From Macrostomum lignano (taxonomy: Eukaryota), in NCBI GenBank assembly GCA_002269645.1, contig NIVC01001447.1, positions 1-64,000 of the forward strand: 64,000 nt of DNA, written 5' to 3'. The notes below the pieces were generated by a model that did no database searches, was not told the origin of the DNA, and saw only the letters and a list, made by a program, of their open reading frames with translations. Within the stretch, counting starts at the first letter, position 1; every line of letters begins with the position of its first letter. Shown here in pieces: positions 53,501-59,072 of this stretch. The position numbers and the translations under genes were made by a program.

Positions 53501-56500
53501 GGACAACACAATGAGAGATACATCGGACAACACAATAAAAACATTGAACTACACAATGAGAGACATTGAACAGCACAAAGACAGAGCTGAAAAATTCCTG
53601 CCTGATCCTCATTCAGCGGTCTGTAGACCTCTTCGACAGCCTGCTGAGCTCATTCCCCCACCTGCCAAGAGACGGCAGCCTGTCAATCAGCACCATGGGG
53701 CTGCGCATCGATGCTGTGCTGACTGCGGCCATGGCGCTCAACCAGACGCTGAAGCGATTCTCCTATTCCACGGCGCTGGATCTGGACCACAGCGACTTCA
53801 AGGAGGACCTGCTGGCGAGCATCAGAGCCGTGGACTTCCAGGGCCTCACGGTAGGTGACAAGCGAGTGAATTGTTGTAGTGCATCATTCATACTGAGGGA
53901 CTGAGGGACTGGCAGATGGAGGGACTTGGAGCTGGGGAGACTGGGAGATGAAGGGAGGGACAGGGAGATGAAGGGAAGGACTGGGAGATGGGGAGACTGG
54001 GAGATGGGGAGACTGGGAGATGGGGAGACTGGGAGATGGGGAGACTGAGAGATGGGGAGACTGGGAGATGGGGAGACTGGGAGATGGGGAGACTGGGAGA
54101 TGGGGAGACTGAGAGATGGCAGATAAGCAATTTCAAACGACCTCAAATGCACCCAGGGACGAGTGAAGCTGGACGCAAACGGCGACCGACTGGCCAACGC
54201 CATCATTTATCAGATCCGAGGTCTGCTTACTGACGCAGCTCGTTGACCAGAGCAAGCGCTTTGAATTTTTCTTTAATAACGGCACATGTTGATTTATTGA
54301 AATTTCAGATTTCACTCCGACAGCAGTTGGGGTGATTGACACCTACTTGAACCAAATCAACTGGACCCAGGATATAAAGTTTGCCGGTAAGAGCATTTTC
54401 AATTGAAATGCTCTCTTTAAGTAGAGTCAGTTGTGAGACTGTGAGATAAGCAGGACTTCTAAATTATAAAATTTACCGTTCTGAATTACGCTACTTACAG
54501 ACAGTAGTACTATTTGCGCATAGAAACTGCCGAAACCCATCGCAGGCGGGAGCCCCCCAACAGCGCGGCCCAGGCTGGTGACCAGCCGCCTCTCCGTCAG
54601 CGTCGCCAGCGCCTCCATCGTGCTGTCGCTGTGCTGCATCGGAGTCTGCGCCACGGCCGGCTGCATGGCTGCCACGCACCATTTCCGGCACCTGAAGCTC
54701 ATCAAGCTGTCATCGCCGAACATCAACAACCTGATGGGCGCCGGCTGCCTCTGCTGCTTTGTCTCCTGCGTGGCTGCCGCTGTGGGCGGCTGCTGGCAGC
54801 GCAGCGCCGTCCTGTGCTGGCTGCAGTCGGCGGCGCTGTGCCTGGGCTACTCCATCGCCTACGGTGCCATGCTGGCCAAGACCTGGCGGGTGCACGCCAT
54901 CTTCACCAGCAAGAACCTGCGCCGGGTGGTGCGTGGCTGAGTGGGGGCCGGAGGCCTTCAGGGCCATCAGGTTGACCATCTGTGTTACCCAGAGCTTGAG
55001 CACTGGGTAAGGAAGGGGGTTGGCTTTCAAAGAGCAGCCAGCAGGTTTGGCGCCCCTCTTACATCAGGTTTGGCGCCCCCCACACCAGGTTTGGCGCCTC
55101 TCTTACACCAGGTTTGGCGCCCCCCCCCACACCAGTTTTGGCGCCCCCCACACCAGGTTTGGCGTCCCCCCCACACCAGTTTTGGCGTCCCCCCCACACC
55201 AGGTTTGGCGCCCCCCCACACCAGTTTTGGCGCCCCCCCCACACCAGGTTTGGCGCTCCTCTCACAGCATGTTTGGCGCCCCCACACCAGGTTTGGCGCT
55301 CCTCTCACAGCATGTTTGGCGCCCCCACACCAGGTTTGGCGCTCCTCTCACAGCATGTTTGGCGCCCCCACACCAGGTTTGGCGCTCCTCTCACAGCATG
55401 TTTGGCGCCCCCACACCAGGTTTGGCGCTCCTCTCACAGCATGTTTGGCGCCCCCACACCAGGTTTGGCGCTCCTCTCACAGCATGTTTGGCGCCCCTCC
55501 CCCTCACAGCATGTTTAGCGCCCCAGACCTACACAAATTTTGTTCCTAGAACTGGTAAAAATGAATATGGGGCTTCTATAGGCAGCTTTACCTGCCGCCC
55601 ACAGGCCATCAAGGACCACCAACTGGTGGCCGGCGTGGCAGTGCTGGCGGCGATCGACTTGGCCATCTTCATCGCCTGGGGCATCGTGGATCCCATGAGC
55701 ATCGCCACGGTGCAGTTTGCTGCCGTGGTGAGTCAGACTGGAGTGAGCGAACGGCTTGACTGCGGGAGGGGTTTGAGTGGACAGACAGACAGACAGACAG
55801 ACAGACAGACAGACAGACAGACAGACAGACAGACAGACAGACAGACAGACAGACAGACAGACAGACAGACAGACAGACAGACAGACAGACAGACAGACAG
55901 ACAGACAGACAGACAGACAGACAGACAGACAGACAGACAGACAGACAGACAGACAGGTGCTGTAGCAGAAGCCCTCCCGCACCTCTAGGAGTCGATTGTG
56001 AGCGGCACGGTCGAGGTGAACCAGGTGGAGACCTGCAACTGCAACTACTCCATTGTGTGGACCTGTGTGTTTTTTGCCTACAAAGGTAACTAGACGCAAA
56101 ATATCGAAGACTGAAACCTCAGGAGTCGCCTTCCCAGATCCCCAGTGTCCGGACCGTCCACTTACACTCTGCTAATCTCATAATTGCAGGCTTTCTGCTT
56201 CTATTCGGAATTTTCTTCGCCTGGGAGACTCGCTCCGTTCACGTGGAGAGCCTCAACGATTCCAAGAAGATTGGCGTCTGCGTGTACAACACGATGGTGA
56301 TGGGGGCCCTGGGCGTCGTTCTGTCCTTCGTGCTGCCCAGCAGCGAGGTGAATCTGCGCTTTCTGCTAATCAACCTGTGCATCATCTTGTGCTGCGGCAC
56401 GGCGGTCATCATTGTGTTCGGCAGCAAGGTTGGGGGATTGTTGTTGTTAAACGAGGGTGGGTAGCCAGGGGCTTCCGCGGATCAGCCCAGGGAAGGGCTC

Positions 56501-59072: not shown

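Follow-up and report, generated by a model that had tools for sequence, protein, structure and literature searches.

Two different retroposon-like inserts with a common 3′ module at a single intronic site of a receptor gene in Macrostomum lignano

Two retroelement-like inserts stacked in one short target raise the question of what they are and why a single site was used twice. Such a pair lies in an intron of a gene for a GABA-B-like family C G protein-coupled receptor (GPCR) of Macrostomum lignano, a free-living flatworm with a repeat-rich and partly duplicated genome and spliced-leader (SL) trans-splicing (PMC8629364). The gene is located on contig NIVC01001447.1 (assembly GCA_002269645.1), of which we analyzed positions 1 to 64,000 of the forward strand (the window). 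A preliminary description, made from these letters alone, had proposed that the inserts, here called elements A and B, represent a candidate new family of target-specific elements of the R2/NeSL/R1 kind. Our analysis indicates that the most fitting reading of A and B is as a pair of new, unclassified, non-autonomous M. lignano retroposons of the type lacking long terminal repeats (non-LTR). The best explanation overall, which we consider probable, is that two different elements with a common 3′ module were inserted by two target-primed reverse transcription (TPRT) events at the same nick.

Both elements lie on the minus strand. The exon ending in ...GGCAGCAAG is followed by GTTGGGGGATTG, element A (789 bp), GTTTGGGGATTG, element B (542 bp), a further GTTTGGGGATTG and unique intron sequence, an arrangement that agrees with the preliminary description in layout, element sizes and the presence of 12-mers at the element borders. 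The features of the locus are as follows.

56190..56428, plus strand: penultimate coding exon (...VIIVFGSK) of the GABA-B-like family C GPCR gene, from translation and homology; exon end AAG
56429..56440, plus strand: target-site duplication copy 1, GTTGGGGGATTG, carrying the working 5′ splice donor GT
56441..57229, minus strand: element A, 789 bp, putative non-coding retroposon; 5′ end at 57229 (CTTGTGTTTTATCCTGGCC...), 3′ end at 56441 (...CCCACCCTCGTTTAACAACAA)
56441..56709, minus strand: shared 3′ module as found in A, about 269 nt, from blastn, alignment and RNAalifold; ends in the tail TTTAACAACAA
57226..57241, plus strand: target-site duplication copy 2, CAAG plus GTTTGGGGATTG, between the 5′ end of A and the 3′ tail of B
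57242..57783, minus strand: element B, 542 bp, putative non-coding retroposon; 5′ end at 57783 (GGTCTCTGACTGC...), 3′ end at 57242 (...CCCACCCTCGTTTAACAACAA)
57242..57512, minus strand: shared 3′ module as found in B, about 271 nt, with the matching hairpin at 57279-57313
57771..57784, minus strand: spliced-leader-like 5′ terminus of B, C|GGTCTCTGACTGC, from alignment to the leader; the first C is common with the duplication
57784..57795, plus strand: target-site duplication copy 3, GTTTGGGGATTG, with the unique intron CGACAGTTTGCC beyond it
57902..58841, no strand: 14-bp minisatellite (GAGAGGGAGAGAAG)n, a 940-bp array in the same intron, outside the inserts and also found in the homeolog
58935..59072, plus strand: probable last coding exon (...ATATV*), from translation and homology to the C terminus of P0001; acceptor position presumed

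The 12-mer copies at 56429-56440 (GTTGGGGGATTG), 57230-57241 and 57784-57795 (both GTTTGGGGATTG) are the only matches in the window when one mismatch is allowed, and each sits exactly on an element border. In shuffled sequence 0.38 matches are expected, and three were reached in 1 of 100 shuffles. The repeat that links the first copy to the second runs 4 nt longer (CAAG), and a 47-nt repeat (D3) at copy 2 is 94% identical to 56425-56471. The target-site duplication of A may thus be 16 bp long, and the exon bases CAAG (56425-56428) may belong to it; that of B is 12 bp. The duplications are almost perfect (12/12 for B, 15/16 for A), and copy 1 carries a G at 56432, position +4 of the intron at the working donor, in place of the T seen in the homeolog and in copies 2 and 3. 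On the minus strand the two 3′ junctions are identical, each reading ...CGTTTAACAACAA|CAATCCCC.

The target itself falls at the border of a receptor exon. The upstream exons and 56190-56428 match GABA-B-like family C receptors, the best matches being M. lignano paralogs with 51% and 49% identity; the M. lignano proteins P0001 and P0002 carry the 7tm_3 domain (PF00003), and residues 346-433 of P0001 map to 56168-56431 by tblastn. Because the annotated paralog P0001 runs on past FGSK (...LVFGSK|IFMLIKHGPSKVDDM) and the window resumes at about 58935, we take AAG|GT at 56428/56429 to be a real exon-intron junction, with a host intron spanning approximately 56429-58934. The preliminary description had called the site harmless on the grounds that the duplication preserves the donor. 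The donor is indeed preserved, but the point is trivial, as the inserts are in antisense orientation and sit 12 nt into the intron.

Evidence that A and B are insertions comes from a homeologous copy of the locus. A 459-aa single-exon glycosyltransferase open reading frame (ORF) lies at 61305-62684 on the minus strand of the window, with the same coordinates on NIVC01001447.1, and the contig of a second M. lignano protein in its 90% cluster (P0014), here called L002, runs colinear to the stretch of the window between about 51.8 kb and 64 kb. Window 55780-56437 aligns to L002 15425-14778 and window 57784-58250 to L002 14786-14321, so that the two flank alignments overlap by 9 nt of L002. Between them L002 has an empty site (14786-14775) that reads AAG|GTTTGGGGAAGG|CGGCAG, with a single 12-mer; across it the homeolog reads ...TTCGGCAGCAAG GTTTGGGGAAGG CGGCAGTTGCC, the last stretch also being given as CGGCAGTTGCCTGTTTCATG. 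When the window flanks are joined with one 12-mer, they align gap-free across this point. Since the homeolog has an empty site with one 12-mer, A and B are insertions and the 12-mer is a target-site duplication rather than an element terminus or a chance repeat. The preliminary description had suggested looking for empty alleles; an empty site was found, in a homeolog rather than an allele.

The homeolog gives the ancestral state and not a date of insertion. Its identity to the window is about 96-97% in the exon and ranges from about 77% to 95% in the intron. Judging from the near-perfect duplications, the insertions are probably much younger than the homeolog split. At the nick, L002 14775-14778 reads AAGG, versus ATTG in all three window copies (56437-56440, 57238-57241 and 57792-57795). 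The empty homeolog thus has no TTG able to pair with a CAA tail, a single observation that fits a TTG requirement. We also note that window 59718-64000 and L002 12363-8081 are 99% identical, compared with 77-95% for 51.8-59.4 kb, a jump suggestive of gene conversion, or of mosaic duplicates, in the region of the glycosyltransferase gene; a second glycosyltransferase paralog, 88% identical, lies at 294-1510 of L002. The host receptor gene (50.5-59.1 kb) and its L002 homeolog are missing from the annotated proteins of the assembly: the protein search with the receptor gave no self-match, and L001 and L002 list the glycosyltransferase only.

The two inserts are not copies of one another. Their similarity is confined to a shared module of 269-271 nt at the low-coordinate end of each, that is, the minus-strand 3′ end, where an alignment of 283 columns between A (56441-56709) and B (57242-57512) shows 76.7% identity (blastn, E = 6e-51). 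The similarity begins abruptly at CGCACTCCCG and continues to the tail. Between the rest of A (520 nt) and the rest of B (272 nt) we found no significant similarity, the best local score of 20 being reached by 90 of 200 shuffles. Because A and B are 23% apart within the shared module, they are neither mutual copies nor products of a local duplication. The preliminary description was therefore right that these are different elements with a common 3′ end and otherwise unrelated 5′ parts, and the local tandem duplication that it had named as an alternative is at odds with this divergence.

The module also has structural features in common between the two copies. The AGCCC...GGGCT hairpin that had been pointed out earlier is found in both elements (in A at 56475-56509, as GCGG..AGCCC-loop-GGGCT..CCGC), with an identical stem and a 6-nt loop that differs at 4 of 6 positions. 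Other stems are likewise kept with varied loops (GGGC-loop-GCCC and CCCA-loop-TGGG), and RNAalifold predicts 60 pairs for the module, 2 of them kept via changes on both sides. Kept stems and free loops are as expected of a 3′ module recognized by a reverse transcriptase (RT), although covariation cannot be proved from a pair of sequences. Also present are the 20- and 21-residue peptides of the preliminary description and its minus-strand tail TTTAACAACAA(CAA). The peptides differ by five third-position changes, one replacement and one 3-nt indel, and the 20-codon frame is real; its coding signal is weak, with 5 of 6 substitutions in the third position (P = 0.018 for one phase, about 0.05 over three), and the frame breaks on both sides. 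Given this P value, the loss of frame and the lack of any protein relative, we did not accept a coding region in the shared part. The frame is at most a relic of the end of a long interspersed nuclear element (LINE) ORF2.

To which class might such elements belong? The 3′ end of each is defined and carries a short tail of the (CAA)n type, ...CGTTTAACAACAA, with no poly(A), and repeat analysis revealed no inverted terminal repeats or long direct terminal repeats at the ends of either. ARAGORN predicted no tRNA, and Rfam searches of both strands at E values up to 10 gave nothing relevant, hammerhead and hepatitis delta virus (HDV)-like ribozymes included. The six stop-free frames of A and B, joined into a 703-aa query, had no match among 5.8 billion proteins, and an exhaustive phmmer search with the 140-aa minus-strand frame of A returned only bacterial repeat proteins that we judged spurious. 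The long minus-strand ORF of A, which ends in the TAA of the tail, was considered as a recorded LINE ORF2 remnant and rejected for want of protein relatives. Thus, in agreement with the preliminary description, no RT or endonuclease is visible in the inserts, nor any ORF with relatives.

On this anatomy, A and B look like non-autonomous non-LTR retroposons of the short interspersed nuclear element (SINE) type. As in retroposons that insert by TPRT, the inserts are absent from a colinear empty site, the target is duplicated, and a defined 3′ end and short repeat tail are combined with a lack of terminal repeats. The (CAA)n-type tail, the unequal duplication lengths, the lack of inverted terminal repeats and the lack of coding capacity all fit TPRT. 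The earlier wording, retroelement-like inserts with target-site duplications, holds for the duplication, which the empty site demonstrates; for the class we infer TPRT and a partner LINE from anatomy. The abrupt border of similarity argues for a composite, SINE-like build, because two 5′-truncated related LINEs would stay similar in ORF2. The composite head-body-tail build of SINEs and their pairing with LINEs through LINE-derived 3′ tails have been reviewed (PMC3747384, PMC7245038). LINE-tailed SINEs of such "stringent" LINE/SINE pairs resemble A and B in being short, non-coding and intronic, with different 5′ parts, a common structured 3′ module, a short repeat end instead of poly(A) and duplications of variable length. 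They differ in that we detected no tRNA, 5S or 7SL head in A or B and no partner LINE in the fetched DNA, and in the 789-bp length of A.

Whether the family is present elsewhere was addressed in about 264 kb of M. lignano DNA, comprising the window and the loci L001-L010; nine of these (L002-L010, about 200 kb) were reached by way of the homeolog, of a paralog and of a gypsy family. Searches of this DNA with blastn and with an nhmmer profile built from the two sequences detected no further copy of A, B or the module, so that the family would number fewer than roughly 10^4 copies. JGI metagenomes, scanned for exact patterns of the conserved core and of the tail, gave 0 matches. No RT, endonuclease or partner LINE was found in the window and the fetched loci, apart from the YIDD RT motif of the gypsy element.

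We propose the following course of events. A and B would be SINE-like elements, or internally deleted LINE derivatives, carrying the same kind of approximately 270-nt 3′ recognition module. This module, a set of hairpins followed by ...CGTTTAACAACAA, would serve as the template entry for the RT of one unseen LINE or of two related LINEs. Two separate TPRT insertions would then have taken place, each antisense to the gene. For a minus-strand element, the first cDNA strand would be primed from a plus-strand 3′-OH; the plus strand would have been nicked directly after 5′-...GGGGATTG-3′ in both events, with the cDNA TTGTTGTTAAACGAG... next, and the exposed primer TTG-3′ could pair with CAA-3′ of the element RNA. 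The second strand would have been cut to the left, at a distance of 12 nt in the case of B and of 12-16 nt in that of A, which places the cut on the exon border or slightly inside it; three direct copies of GTTTGGGGATTG would have resulted. The identical junctions support the use of the same first-strand nick by both events.

Two features of this scheme may explain why the same bond was used again: the enzyme or the priming step may favor a short motif at the nick, and TPRT would recreate its own target. If A came first, the distal duplicate together with the old flank CGACAG would form an intact site again, to be re-used by B; if B came first, A would have been primed at the junction with the (TTG)n tail of B itself. 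Either order yields the observed succession CAAG-12mer-A-CAAG-12mer-B-12mer-CGACAG. Because two hits on one bond are very unlikely without preference (by a rough estimate), some sequence preference or hot-spot effect must exist.

Several points weigh against two TPRT events at one nick. With no further copy of A, B or the module in about 264 kb, mobility as a family is inferred from anatomy only, and no RT, endonuclease or partner LINE was seen in the DNA covered. Neither ARAGORN nor Rfam recognized a small-RNA head with an RNA polymerase III promoter, and the length of A is high for a SINE. The empty site belongs to a homeolog and not to an allele, and its AAGG in place of ATTG is one observation between diverged homeologs. 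Finally, chance re-use of one bond is very unlikely unless the nick preference is strong.

The explanation that survives best beside two TPRT events at a preferred nick is a sub-case of it rather than a separate class. B would have inserted first at an ordinary site, and A would then have been drawn to the (TTG)n/(CAA)n of the resident tail, in the manner of Alu elements that insert in the A-tails of older Alus. That system likewise places a second element at a resident tail junction and produces a head-to-tail pair with common flanks; the tail here, in contrast, is (CAA)n-like and not poly(A). In this scenario the nick for A would fall in ATTG^TTGTTGTTAAAC, a (TTG)4-like run made by the tail of B, the 16 nt upstream of this stretch are exactly the duplication of A (CAAG plus the 12-mer), and the junctions look identical since both tails end in the same CAA repeat. 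However, the order of events is not readable from the sequence and the reverse order fits equally, and the first insertion must still have picked a ...ATTG^ site. We regard such tail-directed stacking as rather unlikely.

Strict target specificity, as the preliminary description had proposed, would make A and B non-autonomous members of a truly sequence-specific non-LTR family with an endonuclease motif of 12-16 nt (CAAGGTTTGGGGATTG/CG) at which all genomic copies lie, and predicts CAATCCCCAAAC after most or all copies. It would account for the use of the same phosphodiester bond twice by two different elements with a common 3′ module, for the regeneration of a full site by the first insertion (duplicate plus downstream flank), and for the fact that the empty homeolog differs at the two bases adjoining the nick. 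The known site-specific elements (R2, NeSL, R1 and Tx1, together with the short internally deleted elements, or SIDEs, of R2) show the same repeated insertion with an identical 3′ junction, and their non-autonomous derivatives have enzyme-recognized ends in common, as A and B would. Those elements, however, reside in multicopy targets, whereas the target here is a unique intron site and no ORF was found. Known site-specific LINEs occupy repeated targets: ribosomal DNA, genes for small nuclear RNA (snRNA) or SL, microsatellites and telomeres. A family could not persist on a unique intron site.

A and B occupy one common site, and with up to one mismatch the 12-mer is otherwise absent from the window and from L002, which holds only a version with two mismatches, at the empty site; the remaining loci were not searched for the 12-mer. 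Membership in the site-specific LINEs calls for an RT together with an endonuclease of the restriction-like or AP type, either encoded or present in the parent element; neither such an RT nor either endonuclease was found here. Because known site-specific LINEs need repeated targets and this target is a unique intron site, we rate strict target specificity as unlikely. The locus offers no evidence for a family of the R2/NeSL/R1 kind, which is unproven either way. An ordinary short-motif preference with target regeneration, or stacking directed by a resident tail, is more likely than strict specificity.

A further reading concerns the 5′ end of B. The M. lignano spliced leader, part of the 109-nt SL RNA whose gene was mapped by Ustyantsev and Berezikov, is 35 nt long and starts CGGTCTCTTACTGC (PMC8629364). 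The last base of the duplication together with the 5′ end of B reads CGGTCTCTGACTGC, which agrees with the leader's nt 1-14 in all but one position (13 of 14). With up to one mismatch allowed, no other such match occurs on either strand of 242.5 kb, where about 0.08 would be expected, and the match lies exactly at the first base of B. The remainder of the 35-nt leader is not recognizable in B. A donor-like G|GTAGC occurs at about nt 38 of B, compared with the leader donor G|GTAAG after nt 35. For the first 140 nt of B three hairpins are predicted, the second and third of them separated by an unpaired UUUCU that is compatible with an Sm site; with a z score of -1.85 the fold is not convincingly better than those of shuffled sequences. 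The 5′ ends of A (57205-57229) and B (57755-57783) have TTTTAYCCTGGC in common at nt 15-26 of B, as TTTTA[T/C]CCTGGC (P about 0.004-0.02), a hint that A may have the same kind of 5′ end cut short by about 8-12 nt.

The leader-like head of B could possibly reflect descent from an SL RNA gene, a switch of template onto SL RNA as reverse transcription came to its end, or chance. SINEs with snRNA-derived heads are known as SINEU (Kojima 2015, PMC4494074), and B would resemble them in having an snRNA-type head if that head derives from SL RNA, an Sm-class snRNA related to U1. It differs in that only its first 14 nt match the leader (13 of 14) and in that its hairpin and Sm-like layout is merely compatible with such an origin. 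Partial spliced-leader sequences have been described at LINE and LTR loci in parasitic flatworms (PMC12582326), and SL-trans-spliced transcripts of transposable elements (TEs) in Hydra (PMC12220107). B resembles these cases as a flatworm retroelement copy that starts with leader sequence, but a retrocopy of a trans-spliced RNA should keep the whole leader or its 3′ part, and B has the 5′ 14 nt only.

One could combine these observations and speculate that B, perhaps with A, belongs to a SINE class that has an SL RNA-derived head beginning at the +1 start of the leader, that retains the donor-like G|GTAGC and an Sm-like site, and that is moved by a LINE endonuclease recognizing a long motif at ...GGGGATTG^. 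We consider this unlikely; if true, it would constitute a new sequence-specific LINE/SINE system in a free-living flatworm, re-targeting the site that it had just duplicated.

That the locus does not reflect two retropositions at all, and stems from unequal crossing-over, an assembly artefact, a Penelope-like or retrozyme tandem, a Helitron or a miniature inverted-repeat transposable element, is very improbable: the head-to-tail order does recall Penelope-like tandems and the sequence comes from a long-read assembly of a repeat-rich, partly polyploid genome (PMC8629364), but elements 23% diverged with unrelated 5′ parts are not an assembly duplication, unequal crossing-over still needs two insertions at one site, the middle 12-mer separates different units as two sequential staggered cuts would leave it, no hammerhead or HDV-like ribozyme was found on either strand at E up to 10, and the ends (GGTCTC and CTTGTG ... 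AACAACAA) show neither inverted terminal repeats nor the TC...CTRR of Helitrons.

Other features of the DNA examined are recorded here in their own right. L002 contains, at 4177-8265, a Ty3/gypsy LTR retrotransposon with gag, a protease-RT region with a frameshift, RNase H and integrase; because its pol falls in a 7-member M. lignano cluster at 90% identity, this gypsy family is probably young. A protein search with its gag and integrase retrieved a single M. lignano cluster. Tandem repeats abound in the window (59 TRF rows), where minisatellites with 14-50 bp units fill most introns and spacers, and a (GACA)44 tract occupies 55780-55956 in an intron of the host gene. At 35701-37625, two inverted arrays of a 151-bp unit (35731-36657 and 36959-37612), whose 92-aa ORFs are identical but lie on opposite strands, form a large palindromic or foldback-like repeat. 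An intronless 190-aa ORF for uL6 (RPL9) at 46629-47201 on the plus strand has no record as a gene product in the protein collection with either start codon. On the minus strand, very long ORFs (1453 and 1055 aa) at 15370-23207 contain about 50 copies of a 51-nt repeat whose translation gives RDRSRDRRYDGSQPPSA-like units, a gene for a repeat protein rich in arginine, serine and aspartate.

M. lignano is a model for regeneration and stem cells, and almost no non-LTR or SINE families have been curated for it. The structured module of approximately 270 nt provides a handle for finding the family to which A and B would belong and its LINE partner. If the leader-like 5′ end of B is a family feature, SL RNA would join the short list of small RNAs that have seeded SINEs. 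The locus itself is a clean natural case of what are probably two independent retropositions from the same nick, with a homeologous empty site beside it, and as such it bears on the regeneration of targets by TPRT and on the trust placed in retroposon insertions as "homoplasy-free" markers.

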